From the sequence record KY555144.1: a stretch of 64,000 bases of DNA; one strand, written 5' to 3'. Numbering within the stretch: the first letter of the stretch is position 1; each line of letters opens with the position of its first letter. The notes under the pieces are model-generated. The model was not told where the DNA came from. It did no database searches and saw only the letters and a list, made by a program, of their open reading frames with translations. This document shows positions 8,254 to 64,000 of this stretch, one piece after another. Both the position numbers and the translations under genes were made by a program.

Positions 8254-8260
8254 GCTTGCA

Positions 8261-8570: not shown

Positions 8571-8575
8571 CTGCC

Positions 8576-9365: not shown

Positions 9366-9619
9366 GGATTCCCCAGCCCGTCGAATTCACCGTGGCCGAC
9401 CTCATCGCCCACCTTGCGACCCTTCCCCAGGACGCCAAGGTCGGCGTGCGTGGCGGGTTCGGGGGCTTCCGGCCGCTCGACGAGATCGCCCCGATCGAAC
9501 TCGTCACCTTCTACGGCGCGACCGACGTCGACCGCATGACGCTGGCGACCGCCGACCCCATCGCCATCAACTGGAAGGGCAAGCGCGGCGAGCCCTTCAC
9601 GGCCATCATTCTCGACTAG
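9362..9619 (+). CDS. hypothetical protein
   Basis: ATGA overlap. Confidence 0.75.
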   Translation: MRIPQPVEFTVADLIAHLATLPQDAKVGVRGGFGGFRPLDEIAPIELVTFYGATDVDRMTLATADPIAINWKGKRGEPFTAIILD

Positions 9620-9627
9620 GAGGACCC

Positions 9628-9867
9628 ATGACCAACCATGTCTGGATTGAACTCGAACCGTCCGCGTCCGAGGGCCACGCCCGCGCCGCCGCCGCGTCGG
9701 CCATGCTGAAGCGCCTGGGTGTCGACGTCGGCGTCCACAAGCCGGTGTTCTGGCACGAGCGCAATGAGCGCTACTGCTTCACGCTCGACGCCTCGGGCGT
9801 CTACGTCGAGGCCGAGGACCACGGCCACTGGTACAACCTCGATTTCCTGGCGGGCGCCGATGTCTGA
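9628..9867 (+). CDS. hypothetical protein
   Basis: GGAGG RBS, ATG 9628 (MTNHVWIE). Confidence 0.75.
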   Translation: MTNHVWIELEPSASEGHARAAAASAMLKRLGVDVGVHKPVFWHERNERYCFTLDASGVYVEAEDHGHWYNLDFLAGADV

Positions 9868-10255
9868 GGTCTTCCCGCCGATCCGCCCCCGCGAGGCCAG
9901 GGACGAGGAAATCCACGGCTTCGTCGTCCGCTACGGCTGGTTCTGGAACGTGACCCTGCTGAACGGCACGATCCTGGCCTTCGATCCCGACGATGTCGAC
10001 CCCTGCCGCTACGGCGTGACGGGCAAGGACGACTTCCGCAACCTCGCCGGCGCGCCCGAGACGATCGCGGCCTACGAGTGCGTCCAGGGCTGGCACGCCA
10101 AGGCCAAGCACCTCTCGGGCTGGACCGAACGTCACGACGACCGGCTCGAAGCCCTGCGGACGGCTTATCGCCGCCTGGAGGAGCAGCGCGAGCGCAACAG
10201 CCGCGCCCTGGAGGAGCACGGCGGCATCTTCAAGTTTCTGGAAGGTCAGGACTGA
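9860..10255 (+). CDS. hypothetical protein
   Basis: ATG 9860 (MSEVFPPI) overlapping the upstream stop. Confidence 0.75.
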   Translation: MSEVFPPIRPREARDEEIHGFVVRYGWFWNVTLLNGTILAFDPDDVDPCRYGVTGKDDFRNLAGAPETIAAYECVQGWHAKAKHLSGWTERHDDRLEALRTAYRRLEEQRERNSRALEEHGGIFKFLEGQD

Positions 10256-10497
10256 TGCAGAGGACCCTCCATTCGACCGGCCAGGAACTTTCGGTCAAGT
10301 TCAAGTTCCCCAGTGAAAACCTGACCTTGACCGTGCATGCCGAACAGGACAGCCCGATGGCGTTCCTTTGGGTCGAAGGCCGCTCGGTCGACTATTTCGA
10401 GAAGCTCCTGAGCTTCGAGCCGGCCGATCTCGATCTCTTGATCGCCACCCTGTCCGAGGCGCGCAAGATGATCCGCGAGCGCGAGCCGCAGGACTGA
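10255..10497 (+). CDS. hypothetical protein
   Basis: TGATG overlap (MQRTLHST). Confidence 0.7.
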   Translation: MQRTLHSTGQELSVKFKFPSENLTLTVHAEQDSPMAFLWVEGRSVDYFEKLLSFEPADLDLLIATLSEARKMIREREPQD

Positions 10498-10498
10498 C

Positions 10499-10753
10499 AT
10501 GCTGACCAAGGACGAGATCACCTTCGCGGGCCTGATCAAGGCCATGGAGGACGCCCGACGCACCGCCAAGGCGGCGGGCGATCTCGTCAGCACGGCCGAG
10601 ATCGCCCGCTGGTTCAAGGAACACGCGCCGATCATCCGGGAGGTCCGCGACAAGGCCGAGGCTGACGAATTCGACGCTGGCGCGAGAGTGTTGACAACCT
10701 CTGAGGAAGGGGCTAAAGACACCCTCGACGACAGCGAAAGGAGCCTGCCTTGA
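10499..10753 (+). CDS. hypothetical protein
   Basis: operon packing; 3' end overlaps a promoter cassette. Confidence 0.7.
   Translation: MLTKDEITFAGLIKAMEDARRTAKAAGDLVSTAEIARWFKEHAPIIREVRDKAEADEFDAGARVLTTSEEGAKDTLDDSERSLP
10688..10744 (+). promoter_or_regulatory. sigma70-type promoter with leader
   Basis: GTGTTGACAACC..GGCTAAAG..CCTCGACGACAGCGAAAGGAG. Confidence 0.8.
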
Positions 10754-50650: not shown

Positions 50651-51526
50651 ATGCCGCGCCTTGCCAACGACCGCCACGAGCTATACGCCCTGATGCGGGC
50701 CAAGGGCATGAAGCCCCAGGCCGCCGCCCAGGCCGCCGGCTTCGTGGCCGGCTCGTCGATCTACGCCGAACTGGAGAAGGACCCCGAGGTCCAGGCGCGC
50801 GCCCAGGAACTGCTCGACGAGAACAACCTCAAGCGCGAGCAGATGCGCACCGCCGCCACCGAGGCGGCCAAGGTCGTCGGTCAGGTCTCGGGCCTGTCCA
50901 AGGCCTGGGTGCTCCAGAAGCTGGCCGAGAACGCCCAGATGGCGGCCCAGGACGGTGACTACAAGGAGAGCAACGCCGCCCTCAAGCTGATCGGCGACGA
51001 GTTTGGCATGTTCAGCGGCGCCTCCTCGGAAGGCACCGAGGGCCAGAACGGCGAGCGCACTTACGACCTCGACGCGATGAGCGCCCTGCTGGTCAAGGGA
51101 ACCGCCACGATCCCGGTCGCGCCGCCTAAGGTCGACCCGTCCGCCGCCTTCGACCTGATCGCCGGCAACGGGGCCGCCGCCCGCCGCGCCCGCGAGAGCC
51201 GGGCCTTCTCCGACGGCGAGGAAAGCGACGCGGTGTTCTCCGAGGACGCCGATATCGACGCGGTCATGGACGGGTCCTGGAGCGGCCCCAGCCCCGAGGA
51301 TTTCCTGGCGGCCGAAAATTCGTCCCAGGAGGCCTCTGAAGCCGCCGACCAACCCGAGCCCCCGGCCGACCCCGTTCCGGCCGCTGGCGACCCCTCCGAG
51401 CCCGAGGGGACCTGGGAGCAGATCGACCCCAAGACCTCGCCCGAAGCGATCATGGCGCGCATCCAAGCCGCCGGCCAATCCCCGACTTCCAGCGATGACC
51501 GGCCCAAGCGCCGCTCCTCGCGCTGA
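50651..51526 (+). CDS. terS: probable terminase small subunit
   Basis: immediately upstream of terL; N-terminal HTH-like (QAAAQAAGF), central helical part, acidic low-complexity tail. Confidence 0.6.
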   Translation: MPRLANDRHELYALMRAKGMKPQAAAQAAGFVAGSSIYAELEKDPEVQARAQELLDENNLKREQMRTAATEAAKVVGQVSGLSKAWVLQKLAENAQMAAQDGDYKESNAALKLIGDEFGMFSGASSEGTEGQNGERTYDLDAMSALLVKGTATIPVAPPKVDPSAAFDLIAGNGAAARRARESRAFSDGEESDAVFSEDADIDAVMDGSWSGPSPEDFLAAENSSQEASEAADQPEPPADPVPAAGDPSEPEGTWEQIDPKTSPEAIMARIQAAGQSPTSSDDRPKRRSSR

Positions 51527-51538: not shown

Positions 51539-54271
51539 GTGAGCTACTATCCGATCGAGGACCGCGCCAAGGCCCGGTCCGTCGTCAAGAACCTGCTGGA
51601 CCTTCAGCGCGAGGCGGTCAAGGCCTCGCGCGGCGGCCTGATCCTGCCGCCCGACCAGAAGGCGATCATCACCCAGGTCACCGAGACCGAGGACCCGGCC
51701 CGCTGGGTCGATCTGCTGGGTCAGTTCGCCGATCGCGTCCAGACCGATCACCTCGCCCGGCTCAAGCCCCTGGCCAAGCACGACTTCAACGCCTTCTGCG
51801 AATACGTCAATCCCGAGGAGGCCCCGGCCTCCAAGTGGCACGTCTACCTGACCTCGCTCCTCCAGGAGATCGAGAACAACCACGAGCTTGAGCGCTTCGT
51901 GCTCAACTGCCCGCCCGGTCACGCCAAGCCGCTCGACGTTGATACCGAGGTCCTGATGGCCGACGGGTCCTGGAAGCGTCTGGGCGACATCACCGTGGGC
52001 GAGTACGTGGTCGGCGAGAGCGGCGCGCGCTGCAAGGTCACCGCCGTCCATGAGCAGGGCGATCTCGCCACCCTGAAGATCACCACCGCCCACGGCCGCC
52101 AGATCATCGCCGCCCCCGATCACGCCTTCCGGGTCGGCGCCACCTGGAAGGAGGCGGGCAAGCTGCGGCCGGGCGACGCGCTGTCCGTGGTCGGCGCCGC
52201 CAACCTCAACTACGACGCCAGCGGCAAGACCATCGACCACTTCGAGCTTGCCGCCTACCTCCAGGCCAAGGGCGGACGCTCCTACTTCCATCGCGTCCAC
52301 AAGAGCGGGCCGAAGACCTACCGCAACGTCTTCCTGTGGACCTCCGACCACCGCGAGGCCAGCAAGATCAGCGCCTGCCTCAAGCGCCTGGGGATCGCCT
52401 TCAAGGGGCGCCTCGCCAAGCACGAGCAGGTCTGGAAGATGCGGCTCGCCACCGAATGGGGCGACGCCCTGGCCGAGGAGTACGGCCTGGACGCGCGGAT
52501 CGACGCGCGCCGGGTTCCGGCCTTTGTCACGAAAGGCGACGAGGAGCAGATCGCCCGCTACCTGTCGACCTACACCTCTCTGGCCGGCGAGGCGCCTGAC
52601 CGCTACACCATCGCGCGCATCATCCTCTACTTCAAGAACCCGGCCTTCGCCCGCGACATCCAGCGCCTGTTCGCCGTGGTCGGCGTCAACGCCCGCATCG
52701 AGGGGCGCAAGACCGGCCGCACCCGGCTGATCCTGTCGGGGCCTGACCTGGAGGCCTACTTCGCCGCCGGCCTGACCTACACCGGTCCCAACGCCGACAA
52801 GCTCGATGACAAGCGCGCGGCCTTCCCGACCTCGCCCTCGCTGCTGGCCGACACCGTCACCTGGATCGAGCCGCACGGCGTGCGCCCCTGCCGCTGCCTG
52901 ACCGTCGAGGACGAGCACACCTTCATCGCCGAAGGGGTGGTGGTCCACAACTCGACCTACGCCTCGCGCCTGTTCGTGGCGTGGCGCCTGGGGCGCGATC
53001 CGCGCCAGAAGATCATCGGCGGGGGCCACTCCCAGCGCTTCGTCGAGAACGAGTTCTCCGGCAAGATTCGCAACCTCGTGCGCACCCCGCAATATCGCGA
53101 CGTCTTCCCCGACGTGGTCATCGACCACGCCACCTCGGCCAAGGACATGTGGGCGATCGCCGGGCACGGCGGGCAGTACGCCGCCAAGGGCGCCGGGCAG
53201 GCCATCCACGGTCTGCGCGCCCACTTCGTCTGCGTCGACGACCCCTACCGGTCGATCGAAGTGGCCGAGTCCGCGATCGAGCGCGAGAAGATCAAGACGT
53301 GGTTCTTCGGCGACGTTGGCTCGCGTTTGTTGCCACTCGCCAAAGTATTCCTCATCATGACGCGCTTCCATGAGGAAGATTTGACCGGGGAGATCATCAA
53401 ACTCAACCAAGAAGTTCTCACCGGCGCCGACCGTTATCACATCGTTGAAGCGCCCGCCCTGTGCTACGACCCCGAGAACGACGTCCTGGGCAGGGCTCTG
53501 GGCGAAGTTTTGTGGGACTACTATGACTTGCATTATTTCAAGCGCAAGCGGTCCGAGTGGAAGTACCAAAGATTTGCTTTGGTTTATCAACAACTTGCCG
53601 ACGCGGCCTCGGACACCTCCATCGCGTCCAAGTTTCAGACCTATGATCACCTGCCGCACCTGGAGCCGAAGGTGCTCAAGGCCCGGCTTGACGCGGGTCA
53701 CGCCGACGAGCGCGGGCGGCCGATTCCGGACCGCAAGGAGCACTTCCGGCGGGTGGTGGTCAGCGTCGACTCGGCCAACAAGCCCGGCGCCCGCAACGAC
53801 TACAGCGTGGCCCAGGTCTGGGGGGAGACCCACGCCCGCAAGCACTACCTGATCTACCAGGAGCGCAAGAAGGTCGACATCACCGGCCTGACCGAGATGA
53901 TCGAGCGGGTGGCCAAGCGCTACGAGGTCGACGCCATCCTGGTCGAAGACAAGGGCAACGGCACCGCCTACATCCAGGCGCGGGGCCAGACCGACAACCA
54001 GCGGCGGCTCGCCCCGGCCCCGATCGAGGCGATTCAGGTCCCGAGCACCTATTCCAAGGAGTTCCGCTTCAACGAGATCGTCCCGATGATCGAGGCCGGC
54101 GAGGTCTTCCTGCCGGGCAAGGCCCCGTGGCTCGACCTGCTGATCCGCGAAATCGGTCAGTTCCCCGAAGGCGCCCATGACGACCAAGTCGACGCCATGA
54201 CGCAGTACCTCCGCTGGGCCAAGTCCAAGCGCACGCGGTTCGGCGCGCGCAAGGTCGGCTCGATGGGCTGA
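51539..54271 (+). CDS. terL: terminase large subunit, intein-containing
   Basis: spliced P-loop NCPPGHAK/ST, Walker B FVCVDDP, MTRFHEEDL, nuclease SVDSA..NDYS, ILVEDKGNG, HDDQVDA. Confidence 0.95.
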   Translation: MSYYPIEDRAKARSVVKNLLDLQREAVKASRGGLILPPDQKAIITQVTETEDPARWVDLLGQFADRVQTDHLARLKPLAKHDFNAFCEYVNPEEAPASKWHVYLTSLLQEIENNHELERFVLNCPPGHAKPLDVDTEVLMADGSWKRLGDITVGEYVVGESGARCKVTAVHEQGDLATLKITTAHGRQIIAAPDHAFRVGATWKEAGKLRPGDALSVVGAANLNYDASGKTIDHFELAAYLQAKGGRSYFHRVHKSGPKTYRNVFLWTSDHREASKISACLKRLGIAFKGRLAKHEQVWKMRLATEWGDALAEEYGLDARIDARRVPAFVTKGDEEQIARYLSTYTSLAGEAPDRYTIARIILYFKNPAFARDIQRLFAVVGVNARIEGRKTGRTRLILSGPDLEAYFAAGLTYTGPNADKLDDKRAAFPTSPSLLADTVTWIEPHGVRPCRCLTVEDEHTFIAEGVVVHNSTYASRLFVAWRLGRDPRQKIIGGGHSQRFVENEFSGKIRNLVRTPQYRDVFPDVVIDHATSAKDMWAIAGHGGQYAAKGAGQAIHGLRAHFVCVDDPYRSIEVAESAIEREKIKTWFFGDVGSRLLPLAKVFLIMTRFHEEDLTGEIIKLNQEVLTGADRYHIVEAPALCYDPENDVLGRALGEVLWDYYDLHYFKRKRSEWKYQRFALVYQQLADAASDTSIASKFQTYDHLPHLEPKVLKARLDAGHADERGRPIPDRKEHFRRVVVSVDSANKPGARNDYSVAQVWGETHARKHYLIYQERKKVDITGLTEMIERVAKRYEVDAILVEDKGNGTAYIQARGQTDNQRRLAPAPIEAIQVPSTYSKEFRFNEIVPMIEAGEVFLPGKAPWLDLLIREIGQFPEGAHDDQVDAMTQYLRWAKSKRTRFGARKVGSMG
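51929..52951 (+). mobile_element. 341-aa intein (Pro1, block F Cys) with degenerate LAGLIDADG domain
   Basis: block A PLDVDTEVLMADG, block B APDHAF, block F PCRCLTV, block G VVVHN/S; inserted between K and S of the P-loop. Confidence 0.9.
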
Positions 54272-54343
54272 CGAGGCCCGTTAACCACGTTTGTTAACCT
54301 CCGTCGGGGCCTTAACCCTAACACGGCGAGGGTTAACAGGTCC

Positions 54344-54512
54344 AGGGACCCTTCGAAATTAACCTTTCGGGGACCCTGGGAAATCATAAGGCGGGGACCC
54401 TGGCCATTTTCCGGCTGGGGACCCTGGCAAATTCATCGCCGGGGACCCTCCGAAATTCATCCTCGGGGACCCTGGCGAATTAAAAGCCGGGGACCCTGGC
54501 GAATCATGGAGC
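54344..54512. repeat. 24-bp-period array, 7 copies of GGGACCCT core
   Basis: GGGGACCCT at 54369, 54393, 54417, 54441, 54465, 54489 and AGGGACCCT at 54344. Confidence 0.9.
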
Positions 54513-54517
54513 CGACG

Positions 54518-54709
54518 ATGGCCGGATTTCTCAACCTGATCCCGAACCTCGCGCCGTTCGCGCTTTGGGGCGTCCTCCTCTGGATCGCCGCCGAGGTGGT
54601 CTGGAGCGTCAGCCTCTGGGTCTACGGCCTGCGGACCCTGTTCAAGCTGCACCGCGACGATCTGGCCGAGGCGATCAGCTTCGAGCGGGCCTTGAGCCCC
54701 TTCGACTAG
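54518..54709 (+). CDS. small membrane protein
   Basis: GGAG RBS before ATG 54518; hydrophobic helix. Confidence 0.65.
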   Translation: MAGFLNLIPNLAPFALWGVLLWIAAEVVWSVSLWVYGLRTLFKLHRDDLAEAISFERALSPFD

Positions 54710-54792
54710 GCGCGGCCCGCCGACCTAAGTCACAGACTGTAGGTTTCGTGACAAGGTAGGATATTCCACAGCGATTTCAAAGGCTTATCGCC

Positions 54793-55041
54793 ATGCCGAT
54801 CCACCGTCTCTTCCACGATCTGACCGTCCGTATCGTCGTTTTGGGGTGGATTTATGCCAAAAAGCCCCGAAAAACCGCTTCAAAAGGGCATAATTTTCAG
54901 CCCCATCCGCCGGCCCAGGCCGTCCAGTGGTACGGCGACGTGGTGCGTTCGTTCCTCGAATCGCTTGAGGCGCTCAAGCCGGCGCTCACGAAACGCGGCT
55001 GGCGTCAAGCCCTCTCGATGCGCCGCCCGCCTAAGTCATAG
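54793..55041 (+). CDS. hypothetical protein
   Basis: ORF bracketed by 30-bp imperfect direct repeats. Confidence 0.45.
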   Translation: MPIHRLFHDLTVRIVVLGWIYAKKPRKTASKGHNFQPHPPAQAVQWYGDVVRSFLESLEALKPALTKRGWRQALSMRRPPKS

Positions 55042-55088
55042 ACCGTGGCCTTCGTGACAGGATCACGCTTCCGTTACCGGAGAACCCC

Positions 55089-55229
55089 TTGCCGCACCTG
55101 GGTTTCTGGCTCGCCGCCGGCTCGATAGCCCTGGCCTGGGCGATCGGGGCTCTGGCGCGGCTCCACCCCGGCCGCGCCAGCCCGCGCCGCCGGTATCGCT
55201 CGGCCAAAGCATCATATATGAGCCCTTAA
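55089..55229 (+). CDS. possible 46-aa membrane peptide
   Basis: TTG start; hydrophobic N-half, basic C-half; weak RBS. Confidence 0.3.
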   Translation: MPHLGFWLAAGSIALAWAIGALARLHPGRASPRRRYRSAKASYMSP

Positions 55230-55251
55230 CCCCCCTAAGGTCTCATATATG
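55213..55251. repeat. 16-bp inverted repeat (1 mismatch)
   Basis: CATATATGAGCCCTTA-N7-TAAGGTCTCATATATG. Confidence 0.8.
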
Positions 55252-55267
55252 CGACCTTACGGCCCTC

Positions 55268-55424
55268 TTGACGCCCTCGTGTTCCTCTGAACGCGAGGGC
55301 GTTTTGACGTCGTCACATTTTCGACTTGACGCGGGAGCGTTTTGACGTCCGAGCGTTTTGACGCGGGCGCATTTTTGATTCGACGGGCGAGCGTTTTGAC
55401 GTCCGAACGTTTTTCAACTTGACG
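55268..55424 (+). repeat. TTGACG / GCGTTTTGACG cluster
   Basis: seven TTGACG, four within GCGTTTTGACG. Confidence 0.85.
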
Positions 55425-55446
55425 TCGTTTCATTTACCGGGAGCCC

Positions 55447-55625
55447 GTTAAGGTTAACGCCGGTCACCGAGCCCTGGGGCGATTAACCACCAGAGCGTTA
55501 ACCCTTCGCCCGTTAACCTATCGGTTGTTAAGGTTAACGCCCCGTTAGGGTTAACGCCGCTTAACCCTGCGCCCGTTAAGGTTAACGCGCCCCGGCCCAG
55601 GCGCCGCCCGGCCCTACCCGTTAAC
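55447..55625. repeat. TTAA(C) half-site cluster
   Basis: twelve TTAA, including GTTAAGGTTAAC x3. Confidence 0.85.
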
Positions 55626-55650
55626 CCTAACCGCCCGACCCCCGCGCCCA

Positions 55651-55692
55651 GGCCATACCCGGTAGGGCCTGACGGCCCTACCGGGTATGGCC
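55651..55692. repeat. perfect 19-bp inverted repeat, 4-nt loop
   Basis: GGCCATACCCGGTAGGGCC-TGAC-GGCCCTACCGGGTATGGCC. Confidence 0.92.
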
Positions 55693-55695
55693 CCG

Positions 55696-55925
55696 CGCCC
55701 CGGCGGAGGCCAGGGACCGCCCCGGCGGAGGCCAGGGACCGCCCCGGCGGAGGCCAGGGACCGCCCCGGCGGAGGCCAGGGACCGCCCCGGCGGAGGCCA
55801 GGGACCGCCCCGGCGGAGGCCAGGGACCGCCCCGGCGGAGGCCAGGGACCGCCCCGGCGGAGGCCAGGGACCGCCCCGGCGGAGGCCAGGGACCGCCCCG
55901 GCGGAGGCCAGGGACCGCCCCGGCG
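55696..55925 (+). repeat. perfect 22-bp tandem repeat, 10 full copies
   Basis: GGCGGAGGCCAGGGACCGCCCC from 55702 to 55921 plus partial flanks. Confidence 0.97.
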
Positions 55926-55940
55926 CTTTTTCGCGCCCCG

Positions 55941-55972
55941 TTTACCTTTTGTTAACTTCTGGCCTCTAGGGT
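55941..55972 (+). promoter_or_regulatory. CtrA-box promoter
   Basis: TTTA-N7-TTAAC then CTGGCCTCTAGGGT. Confidence 0.75.
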
Positions 55973-56020
55973 CGCCCTTGTCCCCGCCGCACTCCCGCGC
56001 CGGGCAAGGAGCTTCCCGCC

Positions 56021-56206
56021 ATGGTCCCCGACTCGATCATGAACCCCCGCGACCACTTCCACCGCCTGCGCGAGGAAACCGCCCGCGCTCTGGTCGAGAC
56101 GTTCGCCGAAACCGACCCCGGCGAGGACTACCGCGCCGAGGAAAAGGCCGGCGCGTGGGTTGTCGCCTATTACGACGCGGCGGGCGAATTCGTCGCCTAT
56201 CTCTAG
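56021..56206 (+). CDS. hypothetical protein
   Basis: AAGGAG RBS. Confidence 0.75.
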   Translation: MVPDSIMNPRDHFHRLREETARALVETFAETDPGEDYRAEEKAGAWVVAYYDAAGEFVAYL

Positions 56207-56230
56207 CCGCCTTCGCCCCCTGGCGCCGCG

Positions 56231-56262
56231 TTAACGGTTTGTTAACATATCGGCGCCAGGGT
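56231..56262 (+). promoter_or_regulatory. CtrA-box promoter (perfect site)
   Basis: TTAA-CGGTTTG-TTAAC, variant -10 CGCCAGGG. Confidence 0.75.
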
Positions 56263-56305
56263 CGCCCTAGCCCGGCGCGTCGCCGCGCCTTCGGAGAAAA
56301 GCCCC

Positions 56306-57109
56306 ATGCTCTACACCCCCGCCGCTCGCCGCCTTCGCGCCTATCGCGAAACCGCCGCGAAGAACACCGAAATTCACGCCCGCCCGCATATGGCCGGCAA
56401 CGTCGCCGGCTATAACGAATCGGTTTGGCCGACGACGGCGCTAGGCGTCGCCGCCAAGGCCGGCGCCTTCAAGCGCCCCGAAACCGCCGGCAACTGGTCG
56501 GAAGATCGCAAAGCCTATTACGCCCCCGCGTGGCCGGCCGGCTGGCGCGTGCTGGGCACGGCCGAAGAGGTCTGCCGCAAGGAAGGATCGCGCCGGGTGG
56601 AACATTCGGGATGGTACACGACGCCCGACGACTACAGCGCCACTCTTTCGGGCTATGTGCTGCAAATCCCCGCCCGCGACGGGGTCGCCCAATACGTCGC
56701 CGGGACCGCTCATAGCGAGTTTGACGGGGTCACCGTCTACCCCTCGCGCCGTTTCGACAACCCGCTAGACGCGGCGAGCGCCGCCGACCAAATCGCCGAA
56801 CGCGACGCCGAAGAGGAACGCGAATATCAAAGCGCGTGGCAAGCGGGCGTGCGCTTCGCCGAACTGGGCGCCGAGGTCAAGGAGGCCCGCGCCGAAGCCC
56901 TGGCGATCCTTGGCGAGCGTCGCAAGGTCAAGGGGCTGGAAACCCCCGCCTTGTGCGGCGCGATCCGGGCGCAAGTCGAGTCCTTGCTGGAGAAGATCGA
57001 AGAGGCCCGCGCCAAGCGCGACGCCCTGGCGCAAGGCAATGACCCCGGCCTCATGTTCTACCCCTCGCCGCGTCTGGTCGCGGCCTTCAATGAGGGGGCG
57101 GGGCTTTGA
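56306..57109 (+). CDS. hypothetical protein
   Basis: GGAG RBS; C-terminal coiled coil. Confidence 0.8.
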   Translation: MLYTPAARRLRAYRETAAKNTEIHARPHMAGNVAGYNESVWPTTALGVAAKAGAFKRPETAGNWSEDRKAYYAPAWPAGWRVLGTAEEVCRKEGSRRVEHSGWYTTPDDYSATLSGYVLQIPARDGVAQYVAGTAHSEFDGVTVYPSRRFDNPLDAASAADQIAERDAEEEREYQSAWQAGVRFAELGAEVKEARAEALAILGERRKVKGLETPALCGAIRAQVESLLEKIEEARAKRDALAQGNDPGLMFYPSPRLVAAFNEGAGL

Positions 57110-57315
57110 GGGTCGCCCGCGATAGCTTCGCCGTGTTCTGGTCGCGCCCTGGCCAGAAATGGGGGTTTCACGCCGACATGAAACGGGCGCTTTACCCAAC
57201 CCCCAAGGCCGCCGCCGACGCCTTCCGCGTCATGTTCCCGCGTGACGTGGTTCGGAGCGTCCGCGACGCTTCCGGCCGCTTCCTGGCCTTCAAGGAGTCC
57301 GCCCCGTGCGCCTGA
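57106..57315 (+). CDS. hypothetical protein
   Basis: TTGA overlap. Confidence 0.65.
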   Translation: MRVARDSFAVFWSRPGQKWGFHADMKRALYPTPKAAADAFRVMFPRDVVRSVRDASGRFLAFKESAPCA

Positions 57316-57587
57316 TCAGCTACAACGTCAACGGAACCGGTTTCAAGGGCGGCTCCGCCCCGCCCGCCCCATGCCCTGGCCTCGCCGGACACGCCGACGA
57401 GGCGGGGCTATGGGTTCCCGACCGTGAGACGGTCGCCGCGCTTCTCCCCCGGCGCTGGCGCCACGCCTTCGCCCGCGCGGCGTTTTGGTATGACGCCCGC
57501 GACAACAAAAAGCCTTGCCGCGCCGACCTCTACGACGCGCGCGGCCGGTACCTGACTCAGGTCTGGGCGCATCCGGTTTTCGCCTGA
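57306..57587 (+). CDS. hypothetical protein
   Basis: AAGGAG RBS, GTG start. Confidence 0.7.
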   Translation: MRLISYNVNGTGFKGGSAPPAPCPGLAGHADEAGLWVPDRETVAALLPRRWRHAFARAAFWYDARDNKKPCRADLYDARGRYLTQVWAHPVFA

Positions 57588-57591
57588 TCGG

Positions 57592-57620
57592 ACGCCCCGG
57601 AAAAATTTCCGGGGCGTTTA
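57592..57620 (+). terminator. terminator hairpin abutting the next CtrA box
   Basis: ACGCCCCGGAAA-AA-TTTCCGGGGCGT then TTACCTTTT. Confidence 0.65.
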
Positions 57621-57675
57621 CCTTTTGTTAACCTCTGGCCTCTAGGGTGACTTTCGCCGCCGGGCAATCCCGCCC
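57617..57675 (+). promoter_or_regulatory. CtrA-box promoter plus GGCAATCCCGCC leader
   Basis: TTTA-CCTTTTG-TTAAC..CTCTAGGGT..CGGGCAATCCCGCC. Confidence 0.8.
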
Positions 57676-57706
57676 GCCGGACCCTCTTTCAAGGATTGCT
57701 CCCGTC

Positions 57707-58750
57707 ATGACCTCTCATGCCATGGTCGCGCACCGTTGGGCGCAGGACGACGAGAACGGCCGCACCGCGCGCGGCTTCAACATGTATTTCGAGCGCTACG
57801 GGCGCGGCGCCGACCGCGTCAACGTGATTTTCTCCTACGGGACTCACTTCCCGGCCGCCGCCTTCGTGACCGACGCGCACGGCCGCCGCGTCGCTCTGGT
57901 CACCACGCGGACTCGGAGCATTTCGACCGCTAAGCACATGTCGCACATTCGCCGGGCGATCCGTGGCCCTTATTTCAACGTCCCGGACGTGTCGCGGATG
58001 CACAAGCCGGGCGGCGCGGGCGACTTCCACGGGGACAACCTGCGCGCCTATATCGAGAGCGCCGCCGGCCTCGCCGCCAAGGCCAAGCGCGCCCGCGTCA
58101 ACGGCCCTTGGCTGCTTTCGCAGGCCCGCGACGTGCTCGCCGAAGCCCAACGCTACGCCGACGCCTTCAAGCTGAAAACCAAGGTTCCGCCCTTGGAAGA
58201 CGTCGCCGGCGCATGGGCGAAGATGACGGCCGCCAAGGCGCGGGCCGAAGCCAAGGCCCGCAAGGAGGCCGAAAAGCGCGCCCGCGAGGCCCGCGAAGCC
58301 GAACGCCTCGCCGACGCCGAAGCCTTCGCCGGGTGGATGCGCGGCGAGCGCCAGAGCGCCCCGTTTAGCTACCGGGTGCGCGATGACGGGACCGTCTATC
58401 TTCGCCGCTTCCGGGGCGTGGTCCGCGACCTGCGCAGCCAAGAGCGCGACGGCTCGCGCGTCGATGAACTGCAAACCTCGCAAGGCGCGGCCGTGCCGTG
58501 GGAACACGCGGTCAAGGCCTTCCGGTTCATCAAGCTTTGCCGCGAACGCGGCGAGGGCTTCCACCGTAACGGCCGGGTGATTCGCGTCGGTCACTTCCAA
58601 GTCGATTCGATCGCCCCCAATGGCGACATGGTCGCCGGGTGTCACCGGTTCGCGTGGGATGAAATCGAACGCCTCGCCAGGGCCGAAGGGGTTTTCGACC
58701 TCCCCGCCGCCGCCGACGCCGTCGAAACCCGGCAAGCCGAACCGGCCTAA
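57707..58750 (+). CDS. conserved hypothetical phage protein
   Basis: start trimmed to ATG 57707 after AAGGA; RSISTAKH..LQTSQGA..VGHFQVD..AGCH. Confidence 0.85.
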   Translation: MTSHAMVAHRWAQDDENGRTARGFNMYFERYGRGADRVNVIFSYGTHFPAAAFVTDAHGRRVALVTTRTRSISTAKHMSHIRRAIRGPYFNVPDVSRMHKPGGAGDFHGDNLRAYIESAAGLAAKAKRARVNGPWLLSQARDVLAEAQRYADAFKLKTKVPPLEDVAGAWAKMTAAKARAEAKARKEAEKRAREAREAERLADAEAFAGWMRGERQSAPFSYRVRDDGTVYLRRFRGVVRDLRSQERDGSRVDELQTSQGAAVPWEHAVKAFRFIKLCRERGEGFHRNGRVIRVGHFQVDSIAPNGDMVAGCHRFAWDEIERLARAEGVFDLPAAADAVETRQAEPA

Positions 58751-58807
58751 GCCCGCCCTCCAGCGCCCCGGCTTCCCGCCGGGGCGCGCCCTTCGAAAGG
58801 TCCGCCC

Positions 58808-58975
58808 ATGAAACCCGTCATTGTTCTGGAACTCGACCAAGCCAGCGCGGACGCCGTAAGCGAAGCCCTCGCCCATGTCTGGCGCGAGGTTTTCGACAAG
58901 AGCCGCACCGGCGCGGCCGGCAAGCTTCGCGCCGTGCTGGATCGCCTCAACACGGTGACCCCCGCCAAGCGCTAG
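58808..58975 (+). CDS. 55-aa hypothetical protein (below ORF-track cutoff)
   Basis: AAAGG RBS; MKPVIVLELDQAS... Confidence 0.65.
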   Translation: MKPVIVLELDQASADAVSEALAHVWREVFDKSRTGAAGKLRAVLDRLNTVTPAKR

Positions 58976-58982
58976 ACCCTCC

Positions 58983-59012
58983 AGCGCCCCGGCTCCCCGC
59001 CGGGGCGCTTTC
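58983..59012 (+). terminator. terminator hairpin (near-duplicate at 58763-58787)
   Basis: AGCGCCCCGGC-TCCCC-GCCGGGGCGCT-TT. Confidence 0.65.
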
Positions 59013-59021
59013 GTGTACGCG

Positions 59022-59080
59022 GTAACCTTTTGTTAACCTCTGGCCTCTAGGGTGACTTTCGCCGCCGGGCAATCCCGCCC
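59022..59080 (+). promoter_or_regulatory. CtrA-box promoter plus GGCAATCCCGCC leader
   Basis: GTAA-CCTTTTG-TTAAC..CTCTAGGGT..CGGGCAATCCCGCC. Confidence 0.8.
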
Positions 59081-59106
59081 GCCGGCCTCGCTTAGGACCC
59101 GCTCAA

Positions 59107-59406
59107 ATGGCCCTTTTCGTCGTCGCTATTGACCCCGCCCTCATCCCCTCCGCCGCCGGTTTCGTCGTCGCCTCCCCCTACGGGTGCGGCAAGTGGCGCG
59201 CGTGCGTCGGGAGCGAGGCGGACATGATCACGCTTCGCGACAAGATGCGCCGGGCGCACCCGACCCCGGAAGGCTACAGCGTCCAGCCCCTGGCGCAATT
59301 CCTGGCCTATCTGGAGACGGTCGGGGCTAATCCTTATGACCAGTACCGCGCCCGCGACGCCGCCGCGCGCATCCTTGACACCCTGACAACGCACCTCGCC
59401 GCCTAA
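59107..59406 (+). CDS. hypothetical protein
   Basis: AGGA RBS. Confidence 0.75.
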   Translation: MALFVVAIDPALIPSAAGFVVASPYGCGKWRACVGSEADMITLRDKMRRAHPTPEGYSVQPLAQFLAYLETVGANPYDQYRARDAAARILDTLTTHLAA

Positions 59407-59456
59407 CCCCTCAAAGCCCCCGGCCGCGCCGGGGGCGCCTCTCTGGAGCAAAGACC

Positions 59457-59768
59457 ATGCAAACCCGTCTCATCGTCGTGCGCGCGCCGACCGCCGCCGA
59501 ACTCGCCGACCCGTCCAGCCGCGCGGGCGGCGCCGAAGTCGTCTTTGAGCGCGCCGACCGCGAGGGCCGCACGCGGCTTGTGTTCGCCTCCTACTGCTAC
59601 GGCTCATATCAGCAATGGGGCGAAACCGTCGACGTGCTCGGCGACAACGTCGAGGCCGCCACCCTCTGGGCGCGCGGCATGGCCCGCGTTCATGACCTCA
59701 TCCAAGAGGACCCGGACGACGACGAGGGCGACGACGCCCCGGCCGAAGACGACGACGGGGAGGCGTGA
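59457..59768 (+). CDS. hypothetical protein with acidic tail
   Basis: GGAG RBS. Confidence 0.8.
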   Translation: MQTRLIVVRAPTAAELADPSSRAGGAEVVFERADREGRTRLVFASYCYGSYQQWGETVDVLGDNVEAATLWARGMARVHDLIQEDPDDDEGDDAPAEDDDGEA

Positions 59769-59771
59769 GCC

Positions 59772-60194
59772 ATGCGAACCACGAAAGCCCAACGCTTCGC
59801 CGCCGTCGCCTTTGACGCCCTGGCCAAGGCCCTAAGCGAAGAGCCCCGCCGCGTCGTCTCCCGCGTGACCAAATGGGAGGGGGCGGGCCATAGCTTCGCC
59901 AACCTGCAACGCGATTATGAGCGTTACGGCCCCGGCCGCCGCTCATGGTTCGGCCGCGACGAAATGCGGTTCTTTGGGACGCGCCTAGAGGCCGCCCCGC
60001 TGGACTTTCCCGCCCTTCGCGTCACCCTCTTTCTGACCTCCGAAACCCCGCCCGGCGCCGGCCGGGTCTGGACCCTTCGCGCCTATCTCTGGGACTCGGC
60101 CGATATCGAGACTTTGACGCGCGGCGACGAAACCGACGCGGCGACCGCGCAAGCCGCCTTTGACCTGCTTTGGCCGATCCTTTCCGGCCGGTAA
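59772..60194 (+). CDS. hypothetical protein
   Basis: GGAGG RBS; WFGRDEMRFFGTR. Confidence 0.8.
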   Translation: MRTTKAQRFAAVAFDALAKALSEEPRRVVSRVTKWEGAGHSFANLQRDYERYGPGRRSWFGRDEMRFFGTRLEAAPLDFPALRVTLFLTSETPPGAGRVWTLRAYLWDSADIETLTRGDETDAATAQAAFDLLWPILSGR

Positions 60195-60248
60195 CCTTTT
60201 GTTAACTTCTGGCCTCTAGGGTGTCTTTGCGGCCGGGCAATCCCGCCC
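60191..60248 (+). promoter_or_regulatory. CtrA-box promoter plus GGCAATCCCGCC leader
   Basis: GTAA-CCTTTTG-TTAAC..CTCTAGGGT..CGGGCAATCCCGCC. Confidence 0.8.
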
Positions 60249-60274
60249 GGTCCGCTCGCCAAGGATCGCACCGC

Positions 60275-60547
60275 ATGACCCGCGCGCAAGCCCTCGCCGA
60301 CATGAACGCCCTCCCCGGTATCATCGCCTCCTTTGATCGCGAGACGGGCGAATATCGCGTGACCCTCCGCTTTGGCCCGCTCCCCATGGGGCGTGGCGCG
60401 CAAGAGTGGATGCACGCCCGCCGCGAAGCCGTCGCCAGCTACAGCGACGACAAGGCCGACGCCCTGGCCACCGCCCGCGACATGTCCAAGCGTTGGGAGG
60501 CGATGAGCGCCCAAGAGCGTTCGCACCTCTATCACAACCCCGCCTAA
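60275..60547 (+). CDS. hypothetical protein
   Basis: AAGGA RBS, ATG 60275. Confidence 0.75.
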   Translation: MTRAQALADMNALPGIIASFDRETGEYRVTLRFGPLPMGRGAQEWMHARREAVASYSDDKADALATARDMSKRWEAMSAQERSHLYHNPA

Positions 60548-60612
60548 AGCCCTCGCCGCCCTGGCCACCGCCGGGGCGGCTCCCCTCAACCCCTCGCCAA
60601 GGATCGCACCCC

Positions 60613-60897
60613 ATGACCGCCCGCAAGCCCCTGACCAAGGAACAAAAGGCCCGCCGCCGCGCCACGCGCCGCGCCGCCCGCCTCACGTGGTCCGATGAGC
60701 GCCGCGCCCGCGAATTCGAGCGTCAAGCCCGCTTCTTCCTGATGATCGCCACCCGCGCCCAAGGCGCCGGCCAAGGCCAGGAAGCCGCCCGCCTCGCGAC
60801 CGTCGCGCAGCGCAAGGTCACCAATTGGCGCATGGCGCAGGCCTGCGCCCGGATCAATGCGCTTGCGGTTCATCCGTGGGCGGGGGTCGCGGCCTAA
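60613..60897 (+). CDS. basic hypothetical protein
   Basis: AAGGA RBS, ATG 60613; Arg/Ala-rich. Confidence 0.75.
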   Translation: MTARKPLTKEQKARRRATRRAARLTWSDERRAREFERQARFFLMIATRAQGAGQGQEAARLATVAQRKVTNWRMAQACARINALAVHPWAGVAA

Positions 60898-61082
60898 TGC
60901 CCCGCCGCGTCCGCTACATGCCGTCCGACGCTCTGGACCTCGCCGACGCGCTCGGCGAGGGGCTGGACCTCGTCGCCACCCTGAGCGAGGCCCGCCGCGC
61001 CGGCGCCCCGTTCGCCGACACCCTCGCCGCCCTAGAGGACTGGGCGCTTAACAATCGCCACCTGATCGAAGAGGACGCCTAA
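60897..61082 (+). CDS. hypothetical protein
   Basis: TAATG overlap. Confidence 0.7.
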   Translation: MPRRVRYMPSDALDLADALGEGLDLVATLSEARRAGAPFADTLAALEDWALNNRHLIEEDA

Positions 61083-61085
61083 CCC

Positions 61086-61286
61086 ATGCCCCGCCCCCTG
61101 AGCCCGCCCATGTCGCACCCTCACGCCCTGGCGCTGATCGCCCTCGCCGGGCGCGTGCTGGACCTGACCCGCCTGCACCCTGGCGATCAACGCAAGGCCG
61201 CGATTGACCTAATCGGCGACCTCTACGCCCTCGCCGACGACATCGACGCCGACCCCGCCGCCCTGACGCAACCGGAGGCCGCCTAA
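61086..61286 (+). CDS. hypothetical protein
   Basis: GAGGA RBS. Confidence 0.7.
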   Translation: MPRPLSPPMSHPHALALIALAGRVLDLTRLHPGDQRKAAIDLIGDLYALADDIDADPAALTQPEAA

Positions 61287-61289
61287 GCC

Positions 61290-61874
61290 ATGACCGCCAC
61301 CCGCTACCGCCTCCCGAACATGGCCGCCTATGGCAAGGGGCTTTCCGACTCGCTTTATGCGGCGTCGGAAGTCGTCGCCCGCGCCATCCCGGCCGAAACC
61401 TCCGCCACCGGGCCGGCCGCGCTGGAAAACCTCCGCTCGGCCCTGATCACCTACAGCGCCGGGGCGCATACGCCCAAGGCCCCGGACTCGGTCCTGGCGA
61501 CTCTGCTCTGGGTTGTCGAAATGGCGCAAGAGCGCGCCACCGACTCCGATTTCAACACCGCCCGCGAGGCGCTGGATGAACACGACGCGCTAGGCTTTGT
61601 CACCGATTGGCTAGAGGCGCACGGGCTGGACGTCTCGCGCATCCGGGCCGCCGAACTCAACGCCGAAGCCCGCGCCCTTCTTGTGGAAGAGGCGGACGCC
61701 GAACAAGCCAAGCTGGACGCCTTGGAAGCCGCCGCCCTGGCCGAAGCGCCGGGCGACGTGATCACCGACGCCTTGCGCCCCTATCTGGGCGCCGCCCTGG
61801 CCGAAACCCACGCCGACGACGTGCTAGACGCCCTCACGCGCGCCGGCTTCCAAATCACCCGCAAGGAGGCCTAG
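61290..61874 (+). CDS. hypothetical helical protein
   Basis: GGAGG RBS. Confidence 0.8.
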   Translation: MTATRYRLPNMAAYGKGLSDSLYAASEVVARAIPAETSATGPAALENLRSALITYSAGAHTPKAPDSVLATLLWVVEMAQERATDSDFNTAREALDEHDALGFVTDWLEAHGLDVSRIRAAELNAEARALLVEEADAEQAKLDALEAAALAEAPGDVITDALRPYLGAALAETHADDVLDALTRAGFQITRKEA

Positions 61875-61877
61875 ACC

Positions 61878-62366
61878 ATGGCTCGCGACGTGTCCCGCTT
61901 CGCCACCCCTGAAAAGATCATCGGGGGTTACCTCATGACCGCCCAACGCGACGGGGCCATGACTGAGGCCGCCGACGTCATCGCCACCCTAGAGGCGGCC
62001 GGCTATGTCATCGCCCGCCGCCGCGACGTCTACACCGACTCGGGGGTCAAGTTGGGCGACGCCCTGGCGGCGCTTTACGACGCCGTCCCGAACTACGCCG
62101 TGCGCTCGCAACGGCTCGCCGACGCCCTGACCCCGGCGCGGGATTACGTCTATCAGCCCCGGTTCCGGGCCAAGCTGGACGCCGCGCCCGGCGCGCGCCT
62201 GACCGACTGCGAAACCGGCGCGTGCGTCTATTTCCAGCCGGGCGACGACGCCGAAGCCTTCCGCGCCCTCTTCGCCCCCTGGCTTCGCGACGACGACGAG
62301 ACGGGCGACGGAAAGGCCCTGGCGTCGATGATGAACGCCACGGCCGAAGAATACTTTTCCGGCTAA
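61878..62366 (+). CDS. hypothetical protein
   Basis: AAGGAGG RBS. Confidence 0.8.
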   Translation: MARDVSRFATPEKIIGGYLMTAQRDGAMTEAADVIATLEAAGYVIARRRDVYTDSGVKLGDALAALYDAVPNYAVRSQRLADALTPARDYVYQPRFRAKLDAAPGARLTDCETGACVYFQPGDDAEAFRALFAPWLRDDDETGDGKALASMMNATAEEYFSG

Positions 62367-62547
62367 GTCATCATTCCTACCGTCTATGACTTGTCACCGG
62401 CCGAACTCTTGCCCGGTGACAGTCTGGGCAAGTAAAGCTCACTCTGGATTTTATGACTTAGCGCAAAGGATTGAAATTGCTCGAAAAATTCCTCGAAGCC
62501 CATAAAGTCGTTTTCTGGCTGCTTTTGCTGGCCTGTTTGTGGCGCTT

Positions 62548-62606
62548 TTAACGCTTTGTTAACCCCTGGCCCTCTAGGGTCGAATTCCCGGCGCGGCAAT
62601 CCCGCC
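62548..62606 (+). promoter_or_regulatory. CtrA-box promoter (perfect site) plus GGCAATCCCGCC leader
   Basis: TTAA-CGCTTTG-TTAAC..CTCTAGGGT..CGGCAATCCCGCC. Confidence 0.8.
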
Positions 62607-62633
62607 GCCCGGCCTTCCTTCGGAGCTTCCAAA

Positions 62634-63080
62634 ATGTTCGCTTCCGTGACCCTTCCCGCCCATGACGCCCAAGGCCTGAGCCTCGAAACCGTCCACATGG
62701 TTTTCGCCCGCGAACTGGCGCAACATTTCGAACACGTGATTTCCGCCCCCGTGGTCGAAAGCTGGCGCGACGAGGAAACCGGCGCCGACCACGCGCAAGC
62801 CGCCGTTTGCTTCACCGTCTCGGCGACCCCGGCCGCGTGGGAAGCCAAGGGCGGGCGCCTCGCGCGCCGGCTGGAAAACCTCGCCGCGCGCTATGCCGCC
62901 GACTGCGACGCCCCGGCCCTGACGGTCACCCATTGCGACGGGCTAACGGTCTATGTCGGCGCTCTGGAAGCCCTGGCGCGCCCCGCTCCGGTGCAAGGCC
63001 CGACCCGCGACGCGGACCCGGCTTTCCTCCCCCGCCAGCGTGAGGACAAGGCCGCCCGCTTCGATCGCCTGACCGCCTAG
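62634..63080 (+). CDS. hypothetical protein
   Basis: GGAG RBS, ATG 62634. Confidence 0.8.
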   Translation: MFASVTLPAHDAQGLSLETVHMVFARELAQHFEHVISAPVVESWRDEETGADHAQAAVCFTVSATPAAWEAKGGRLARRLENLAARYAADCDAPALTVTHCDGLTVYVGALEALARPAPVQGPTRDADPAFLPRQREDKAARFDRLTA

Positions 63081-63097
63081 CCCCTGGCCTCCCCCCT

Positions 63098-63131
63098 AGC
63101 GCACCGCCCCTAGAAAGGCGGTGCGCTTTTC
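63098..63131 (+). terminator. Rho-independent terminator
   Basis: AGCGCACCGCC-N8-GGCGGTGCGCT-TTT. Confidence 0.8.
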
Positions 63132-63139
63132 TGTGTCTG

Positions 63140-63170
63140 TTTACTTGTTGTTAAGGAATAGCCTGCTAGT
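63140..63170 (+). promoter_or_regulatory. CtrA-box promoter (variant)
   Basis: TTTA-CTTGTTG-TTAAG..GCTAGT. Confidence 0.6.
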
Positions 63171-63223
63171 GTCCCCTTGTCGGCGGACGCATCCCGCGCC
63201 CGCCCCTCTCTGGATCGCTCCCC

Positions 63224-63616
63224 ATGGCCCGCCCCTCTGACCTGCTCAACGTCAACGCCGCCCGCGTCCTGGCTTGCCTTGAGCCTATCGCCGCCGCCGC
63301 TAAGACGGCCCCGGCCGCCGACCGCGCCGCCCTTTCCTACCTGCTCGACGCTGGCGAGTATGTCGCCGCGTGGCGCCGCAACCTCACGGAAACCGACCGC
63401 CGCAAGGCCTATGGCGCGGCCTGCGCCGCCGAAGCCCTGGCGCTCGCCAACGCCTATCAGCCCGCCACCCTGCAAGGCGGCGCCGTCCGCCGCGCTCTGG
63501 GCGCCTATGCCGCCGCCCTAAAGGTCCTGCTGGACGGGGAGCCGGTTAAGGCGGTCCGCGCCGCCGAAGGCGCGGCGCTTTCGGTCCGCGCTCGCTACGC
63601 CAACACCCGCCTTTAA
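63224..63616 (+). CDS. Ala-rich hypothetical protein
   Basis: GGA RBS; stop lies inside the next CtrA box. Confidence 0.75.
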   Translation: MARPSDLLNVNAARVLACLEPIAAAAKTAPAADRAALSYLLDAGEYVAAWRRNLTETDRRKAYGAACAAEALALANAYQPATLQGGAVRRALGAYAAALKVLLDGEPVKAVRAAEGAALSVRARYANTRL

Positions 63617-63643
63617 CCTCTTGTTAACACCCCCCGGCTATGG
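63613..63643 (+). promoter_or_regulatory. CtrA-box promoter (perfect site)
   Basis: TTAA-CCTCTTG-TTAAC..GGCTATGG. Confidence 0.75.
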
Positions 63644-63670
63644 TCGGGGGGTCGCAAGGAGACACCCGAC

Positions 63671-63865
63671 ATGACCCGCCCCGGCCCCGCCTCGCTCTTG
63701 ACCCCGCAAGCCCGCTTCTCGTCGTCGCGCGTCCTGATCCTTCCGGGCGCGGCGCCTATGCCGATTCGCCAGCCGCGCGGCCTTAGCGCCGTCGAGTGCG
63801 TCGCCCTTGGCGTGACGCTGGGCGCGGCGCTCTACCTCGCCGCCCGCGTGTTCGGTCTGGTCTGA
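63671..63865 (+). CDS. small membrane protein
   Basis: AAGGAG RBS; C-terminal hydrophobic helix. Confidence 0.7.
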   Translation: MTRPGPASLLTPQARFSSSRVLILPGAAPMPIRQPRGLSAVECVALGVTLGAALYLAARVFGLV

Positions 63866-63876
63866 CCAGACCCCCG

Positions 63877-63902
63877 CCCCGGCCCTACCGGTAGGGCCGG
63901 GG
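63877..63902. repeat. perfect 26-bp palindrome
   Basis: CCCCGGCCCTACCGGTAGGGCCGGGG. Confidence 0.92.
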
Positions 63903-64000
63903 GTGTGTCCCATAATGAGACACCCCCCGCCACCTAGTATCTTTTTTGATTCGGAGGGACCCAAAGGCCCCCTACGTTAACCATTTTTCGCGGCGCCCCC

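Follow-up and report, generated by a model that had tools for sequence, protein, structure and literature searches.

The DNA analysed here, a 64,000-nt window, is the right-hand 64 kb of the Caulobacter phage Ccr5 (KY555144.1, 100% identity; window positions are record positions minus 154729), a phiCbK-like Shapirovirus. Just past terL, the gene for the large terminase subunit, it carries an array of seven 24-bp units built on the oriented heptamer GGGACCC, and comparison with relatives suggests that this is a previously undescribed, deeply conserved, putative protein-binding array. The GGGACCC units may be recognition elements of the packaging machinery, with the array serving for loading and solitary units placing the right-end cut, a reading to which we give close to, and somewhat under, an even chance. 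The anatomy, conservation, terminus geometry and copy-number variation reported below are observations, from which we infer both a packaging role and the identity of the protein that would bind.

The GGGACCC array downstream of terL

The terminase genes and the array lie on the same strand:

50651-51526, plus strand: candidate for the small terminase subunit (TerS), 291 amino acids, matching phrog_11494 (terminase small subunit, E 1e-179)
51539-54271, plus strand: terL, large terminase subunit (TerL), from the annotation of a 90%-identical phiCbK record and from relatives found by tblastn
54282-54340, plus strand: four TTAAC-type boxes (CtrA-type half-sites) between the terL stop and the array, from the sequence and half-site counts
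54343-54507, plus strand: 24-bp array of seven oriented units, C-R-GGGACCC-T-N3-RAAT(T), found with Tandem Repeats Finder (TRF) and a repeat finder

The initial annotation of this DNA had described a 24-bp array with an invariant core and a phased A/T tract, and both features were borne out. Seven GGGACCC cores begin at 54345, 54370, 54394, 54418, 54442, 54466 and 54490, with a spacing of 25 and then 24 bp; each is followed by a phased RAAT (A/T) tract, and the seventh unit runs into the start codon of gp320, the next gene. Across the whole window the heptamer is not enriched (18 copies observed, 20.8 expected), and the signal is its clustering. In 94 units from 15 phages, the informative positions read C-R-GGGACCC-T-N3-R-A-A-T-T (more generally GAWWTT), and the central A of GGGACCC is present in all 94 (100%), which makes the unit oriented. 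The TGG flank that lay behind an earlier reading of the core as CCAGGG is weakly conserved and carries little information. We rejected a sigma-54 reading of TGGC-N-GC within the units, as by eye only three of the seven copies fit it and Magneto and Karma do not conserve it. An Rfam scan of 53300-56500 returned one sub-threshold chance match only.

The oriented unit recurs 3' of terL, in five to nine copies at 22-26-bp spacing, in all Shapirovirus and Poindextervirus phages checked. A GGGACCC array is also found in Colossus, CcrPW and CcrSC, in the Brevundimonas phages Bajun and Bambus, in the Sphingobium phage Lacusarx and, in a less regular form, in the Erythrobacter phage XM05, and two GGGWCCC units follow terL in phage Mwe-JY26 (PP438418.1). 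The last of these is listed with a Microcystis host, yet the region fetched has 59% GC and encodes a phiCbK-type TerS and TerL, and the host assignment looks doubtful. Several contigs from IMG/VR whose TerL is 35-53% identical carry the array as well, often 100 nt or less from the end of terL, bringing its observed linkage to the terminase genes to 15 phage genomes together with these contigs. TTAAC-type boxes precede the array in Bambus, Lacusarx and XM05 as they do in Ccr5. In three of the contigs (L064, L066 and L032) the array is present with essentially no GTTAAC-type sites in 3 kb, so it can be separated from CtrA-type regulation, which argues against a CtrA-linked host factor, and, as these sequences suggest, probably from any single host factor as well.

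The arrays are mentioned in neither Gill 2012 nor Mascolo 2022, and text searches (GGGACCC with Caulobacter; CbK with tandem repeats or iterons) found no description of them. When bacterial genomes were scanned for three phased GGGACCC motifs, at least 120 matches were obtained, mostly in high-GC Actinobacteria and with TerL or TerS nearby in none of those listed, a scan that is uninformative on any use of the motif by hosts.

The leading candidate for a reader of the GGGACCC units is TerS. Residues 5-127 of the candidate protein also match general TerS PHROGs, its phiCbK homologue carries a TerS annotation, and a helix-turn-helix (HTH)-like motif at its N terminus is kept in relatives. The phiCbK terminase has been proposed as a new class by Gill et al. 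on sequence grounds alone (Gill 2012). The Ccr5 record labels terL as a hypothetical protein; in phiCbK the gene is annotated as intein-containing, and the homologous intein position in Ccr5 is approximately 51929-52951.

GGGACCC units at the genome ends

Consistent with the direct terminal repeats of about 10 kb that the initial annotation had ascribed to this phage group, Ccr5 has a direct terminal repeat of 10,508 bp, annotated at 53493-64000 and identical, by sequence comparison, to positions 1-10508 of the record. The repeat contains both the GGGACCC array and a second array of 22-bp units, which sit just past terL, 0.85-2.4 kb in from its left end. Three features mark its boundaries:

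53493, no strand: left boundary of the terminal repeat and left physical end of the genome, inside terL, from the Ccr5 record annotation and phiCbK homology
53250-53650, no strand: AT-rich dip around the left terminus, inside terL (45-53% GC compared with approximately 68%), from a composition profile
63955-64000, plus strand: right-terminus block of AGGGACCCAAAGGCCCCCT, then TTAACCAT, then the genome end, which falls 45 nt after the start of GGGACCC

Experimental mapping of the phiCbK termini, with tag ligation and with read coverage, placed the left one in terL codon 652 and the right one at an intergenic position (Gill 2012); the homologous positions in Ccr5 are 53493 and 64000.

Of the 26 copies of GGGACCC in 116 kb of Ccr5, the intergenic ones are limited to the seven array copies and a pair flanking the right terminus, one inside the repeat at 63956 and the other 172 nt beyond it. 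The inner copy lies in AGGGACCC, which is present at 63955, where the initial annotation had noted a further copy of the motif. A second GGGGACCCAAGGCCCCCT stands 172 nt outside the repeat (L010:10675-10700), so that the right cut is flanked by two direct units. The right-terminus block, approximately 56 bp in length, is invariant in Ccr5, Rogue, Swift and Magneto, with diverging flanks. A solitary AGGGACCCAA begins 45-46 nt before the annotated right boundary in these four phages and in CcrPW and CcrSC, which together span three genera; the terminal repeats of CcrPW and CcrSC are otherwise dissimilar, yet they keep this distance. With its 14 specified bases, the right-terminus motif is too unspecific for a scan of viral contigs.

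The left terminus of Colossus, located by read coverage, falls 58 nt after a solitary unit that equals copy 1 of the Ccr5 array at 17 of 17 positions, with the other six units lying 354 nt farther along, and the annotated repeat of CcrPW begins at the counterpart of the same solitary unit. The distance from the mapped left end to the downstream array is 851 bp in Ccr5, approximately 350 bp in Colossus and approximately 1.9 kb in CcrSC. As to closeness to a genome end, the picture is mixed: solitary units lie 45-46 nt from an annotated right end or, in Colossus, 58 nt from the left one, and the seven-unit array of Ccr5 is hundreds of base pairs from its left end. The two arrays do not bracket a cut site: the first begins 851 bp downstream of the left terminus, and the right terminus is approximately 8 kb downstream of the second.

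The AT-rich dip is found only where the left terminus is within terL (Ccr5, Rogue, CcrBL10, Bajun and CcrSC), with Colossus, CcrPW and Bambus having none. We read the dip as the likely context of the left cleavage site. It is built from rare AT-rich codons that are kept in Rogue and CcrBL10. Around the left terminus, Ccr5 and Rogue have a nucleotide identity that only modestly exceeds the terL average and is non-discriminating.

These elements could fit together as follows. The terminase would assemble on the array, which would sit on the packaged side of the left cut, and TerL would cut at a separate AT-rich site upstream, within terL and, in Ccr5, 851 bp away. Packaging would then move to the right, through the genome and then through the next terminal-repeat copy, until a solitary GGGACCC unit set the terminating cut 45 nt downstream in a cosQ-like manner. 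In its fullest form, GGGACCC would be the recognition code of the phiCbK-type terminase, with the array loading the enzyme, single units directing cuts approximately 45 nt away and two cuts 10.5 kb apart producing the terminal repeat; we put this forward tentatively, as a possibility rather than an expectation.

Several observations weigh against a packaging role. The presumed DNA-contacting helix of TerS, which was chosen from the HTH-like motif and not from a modelled structure, is not the same in Lacusarx, XM05 and JY26 as in the Ccr5 group, whereas the core is invariant, and the more distant roseophage DSS3P8 lacks the array despite having a TerS homologue. The Ccr5-type left terminus itself has no GGGACCC close by, and the distance from the array to the left cut is far greater and more variable than is known for pac and cos sites. 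The right boundaries of CcrPW and CcrSC are their depositors' annotations. Finally, the array stands just past CtrA-type boxes and just before a small gene, where an operator or a transcribed leader would be well placed.

The 24-bp array might accordingly be a transcriptional operator, roadblock or insulator at which a bound regulator, of phage or host origin, separates late terS-terL transcription from the early genes of the terminal repeat or gates the first small gene. It does lie between the CtrA-type boxes at 54282-54340 and gp320, with its last unit over the start codon, the order of boxes, array and small gene is repeated in Bajun, CcrSC and Lacusarx, and the terminal repeat is known to hold CtrA-controlled promoters. 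However, the array is retained in lineages without CtrA-type boxes and is anchored to the end of terL, not to the downstream gene, and an operator would leave unexplained the solitary units fixed 45-46 nt from the right terminus. A scan with sigma-70 and terminator consensus sequences was also negative for a sigma-70-like promoter and gave nothing useful within the block between the arrays, the scanned consensus being different from Caulobacter promoters. We consider an operator function unlikely.

The block between the arrays and the 22-bp repeat

From the end of the GGGACCC array to the promoters of the next annotated genes, the terminal repeat is laid out as follows:

54518-54709, plus strand: gp320, 63 amino acids, small open reading frame (ORF) right after the 24-bp array; annotated coding sequence, phrog_7368, function not assigned
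54793-55041, plus strand: small ORF, 82 amino acids, absent from the Ccr5 annotation; from the ORF list and PHROG matches
55089-55229, plus strand: small ORF, 46 amino acids, absent from the Ccr5 annotation; from the ORF list and PHROG matches
55213-55251, no strand: inverted repeat built on CATATATGAG, 16 nt, 94% complementary, fold z -5.4
55272-55305, plus strand: intrinsic-terminator-like hairpin followed by TTTT, seen in the sequence; the homologous site is an annotated rho-independent terminator in phiCbK and Karma
55268-55424, plus strand: TTGACG / GCGTTTT cluster with 7 TTGACG and a 54-bp super-repeat
55444-55631, no strand: GTTAAGGTTAAC / TTAACC cluster of CtrA-type half-sites, with no canonical TTAA-N7-TTAA among them
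55651-55692, no strand: perfect palindrome or hairpin with 19-bp arms and a 4-nt loop; DNA fold -27.9 kcal/mol, z -7.7
55696-55925, plus strand: 22-bp array, 10.5 perfect copies (TRF, 100% matches)
55933-55983 and 56223-56273, plus strand: two copies, in direct repeat, of a 51-nt promoter-like element ahead of gp321 and gp322

The TTGACG cluster, the TTAA cluster and the two inverted repeats that the initial annotation had reported between the arrays were all located. The motif clusters of this structured block next to terL are real, but the block is not purely non-coding, since it contains three small ORFs with PHROG families that have no assigned function. The two non-annotated ORFs match phrog_21774/16102 and phrog_13140 and are annotated in phiCbK and Karma, and gp320 is hydrophobic and, by inspection, probably membrane-spanning. 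A 37-nt direct repeat, 81% identical and containing GTCAC..GTGAC, follows each of two small ORFs (54717-54753 and 55023-55059) and may be a regulatory or terminator element.

Equivalents of the TTGACG/GCGTTTT cluster (TTTGACGC, GCCATTTT, GCCGTTTT; period 16-29 bp) are present in Bajun, Bambus, CcrSC, Colossus, Lacusarx and XM05. The cluster is T-rich and iteron-like, consisting of GCGTTTTGACG in Ccr5, GCCATTTT in Lacusarx and GCCGTTTT in XM05, and its place is always after the GGGACCC array and before the CtrA-type cluster; all three repeat classes keep this order across the group. TTGACG is over-represented in the window (63 copies compared with 27 expected); most copies are on the minus strand at 1-47000, outside the terminal repeat, and the excess could reflect promoter -35 boxes or coding bias.

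Canonical TTAA-N7-TTAA boxes occur at three positions in the window, 56231, 62548 and 63613, all of them in the terminal repeat (3 observed compared with 0.01 expected). The first, at 56231-56245, is held by the second 51-nt element and is the homologue of the box in the phiCbK gp005 promoter, for which CtrA binding was seen in an electrophoretic mobility-shift assay and CtrA-dependent expression with a lacZ fusion (Mascolo 2022, PMC9437464). At 56231, then, there is an intergenic TTAA-N7-TTAA homologous to a CtrA-bound site, as is required of a CtrA-regulated site.

Relatives keep the hairpin with 19-bp arms, and CcrBL10 does so with a compensatory change from C:G to T:A; Swift and Rogue have a rearranged hairpin region, beside an inserted minus-strand gene. 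We rejected this hairpin as an intrinsic terminator, there being a T run on neither strand. Its sequence, CCCTACCGG(G)TAGGG, recurs as a half copy upstream at 55603-55623 and, at 63878-63900, as an 18-bp palindrome that follows the final gene of the terminal repeat. We read the inter-array block as an early-gene control region comprising the small ORFs, the terminator, the TTGACG/GCGTTTT cluster, the half-sites, the palindrome and CtrA-dependent promoters.

The block as a whole could alternatively be a replication origin, a maintenance locus for an episomal state, or both, gated by the host cell cycle in the manner of the Caulobacter chromosomal origin. Dolichocephalovirinae are reported to be able to persist as replicating, stably inherited episomes for which a host-recognised origin has been postulated (PMC12195562), the kept order of the three repeat classes would suit such a locus, and there is a likeness, formal only, to the sopC repeats of the F plasmid (PMC3177203). 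Yet of the features of iteron origins only direct repeats are present in the block; no Rep, ParA or ParB-like domain and no Pfam match was found in the ORFs next to it; ParA, ParB and partition terms are absent from the published annotation tables of six phiCbK-like phages; and published scans found no clustering of DnaA sites. The replication module is elsewhere in the genome (Gill 2012), and the geometry of the right terminus would again go unexplained. An origin or maintenance function at this site appears improbable to us.

Less credible still is a region at which DNA entry pauses, similar to the injection-stop signal of T5, with the host protein CtrA staging delivery of the genome. A long terminal repeat with repeats, palindromes and host-regulator boxes is what such a region might look like, but phiCbK is not known to transfer its DNA in two steps, the position of the block is 0.85-2.4 kb from the left end and not at the inner end of an early region, and in some relatives the GGGACCC array occurs without host-factor boxes. 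We regard this as very unlikely.

The 22-bp array is perfect, as the initial annotation had stated, but its copy number varies widely among close relatives:

Ccr5: 10.5 copies
Ccr32, Ccr34, S2L and phiCbK record JX163858: 7.5 copies
phiCbK record JX100813: 5.5 copies
Karma and Magneto: approximately 1.5 copies
Ccr29: one degenerate copy
CcrBL10, Swift and Rogue: none

Across relatives, then, the 24-bp core is conserved and the 22-bp count falls from 10.5 to 0. In the low-copy state, seen in Karma and Magneto, a 12-bp core lies between two copies of a 10-bp direct repeat. Replication slippage classically acts on cores with a short direct repeat on either side, and the perfect copies, the variable count and the flanked low-copy state of the 22-bp array are those of a slippage-type variable-number repeat. 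Karma, Magneto, Swift and Rogue share the terminal boundary sequences of phiCbK (Gill 2012). Because the 22-bp array is absent or at low copy in phages with the same termini, it is dispensable for terminal-repeat formation; it also has no special fold (z 0.34). Judged by its copies and their distribution, the 22-bp array is best read as a young, unstable, slippage-generated tandem repeat without a conserved role, so that of the packaging signal first proposed only the link between GGGACCC and packaging, which is plausible and has comparative support, is left, and a part in it for the 22-bp array is not supported.

The two independent phiCbK records, JX163858.1 and JX100813.1, differ in having 7.5 and 5.5 copies of the 22-bp repeat, and JX163858 was opened right beside it, which suggests that the repeat broke that assembly. 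The instability of this visually striking array bears on assembly and strain typing, not on packaging.

The initial annotation had described the two arrays as carrying the same core in opposite orientation and had suggested that, facing each other, they load one protein, perhaps TerS, as a composite signal for terminal-repeat duplication and packaging. The sequence GCCAGGGWCC is indeed literally common to both arrays, and a 9-nt word on the same strand, CCAGGGACC, is shared by the 22-bp unit and copy 1 of the 24-bp array and is found at the right termini of CcrPW and CcrSC. However, GGGACC occurs in the 22-bp unit on just one strand, the plus strand, and GGGACCC on neither; the unit thus lacks the invariant heptamer as well as the A/T tract. 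When the 22-bp unit was compared with the 24-bp array against composition-matched shuffles, the longest word shared in opposite orientation was 8 nt (P = 0.16), whereas the best match was the same-strand CCAGGGACC (P = 0.035). With the 22-bp array absent or in single copy in Karma, Magneto, Swift and Rogue despite identical termini, and its count differing between two records of one phage, we consider facing arrays the least probable account of this region, to be set aside.

Comparison with known systems

A formal likeness to the GGGACCC array is seen in the sopC centromere of the F plasmid, where 43-bp repeats stand 12 in tandem and GGGACC..GGTCCC forms an inverted repeat in each (PMC3177203). 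The likeness is limited to tandem phased units around GGGACC: the sopC repeat, with its two 7-bp arms, is a binding site for SopB, the product of a neighbouring gene, whereas the Ccr5 unit is a single oriented heptamer in a phage with no known ParA or ParB genes.

Part of the block falls within what has been described for these phages. Mascolo 2022 (PMC9437464) defined a class of CtrA-type sites in phiCbK-like terminal repeats, to which the Ccr5 TTAA cluster and the 56231 box belong, although most of the sites at 55444-55631 are half-site arrangements and not TTAA-N7-TTAA. The GGGACCC array, the TTGACG/GCGTTTT cluster and the 22-bp repeat are not described there.

In T5, the injection-stop signal is a mostly untranslated region rich in repeats and palindromes, within a terminal repeat of approximately 10 kb and with ordered DnaA boxes (Davison, bioRxiv 10.1101/866236). 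The Ccr5 block is likewise large, mostly untranslated and rich in repeats and palindromes, lies in a repeat of approximately 10 kb, has ordered boxes for a host master regulator and is conserved across relatives, but its boxes are CtrA-type whereas those of T5 are for DnaA. We know of no counterpart of the GGGACCC array in T5.

In T7, short repeat arrays abut the borders of the 160-bp terminal repeat. T7 and Ccr5 have in common short tandem arrays tied to a direct terminal repeat in a non-permuted genome. The arrays of Ccr5 differ in not abutting a border: they begin 851 and 2,203 bp inside the boundary at 53493, and only one of them is conserved.

The cos site of lambda is composed of cosQ, cosN and cosB, and pac sites contain repeated terminase-binding elements, such as the hexamer clusters of P1 and pacL and pacR of SPP1. 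As in these systems, Ccr5 has repeated cis elements by the terminase genes and near the genome ends; the solitary unit before the terminating cut would resemble cosQ, and the multi-site array on the packaged side would resemble cosB. There are two differences. The Ccr5-type array is 0.35-1.9 kb from the left cut, compared with no more than approximately 200 bp in those systems, and the left and right cuts of Ccr5 are distinct sites 10.5 kb apart, giving a long terminal repeat.

To our knowledge, it is not understood how the ends are selected and duplicated in phages with long direct terminal repeats, such as T5, SPO1 and phiCbK, and we know of no packaging signal yet defined for any of them. 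A short motif that is invariant across a broad group of phages, and is tied both to terL and to the right terminus, offers a concrete candidate cis element for end selection, and, if the packaging reading is true, a GGGACCC packaging code would be common to phages from Caulobacter through Sphingobium and Erythrobacter.

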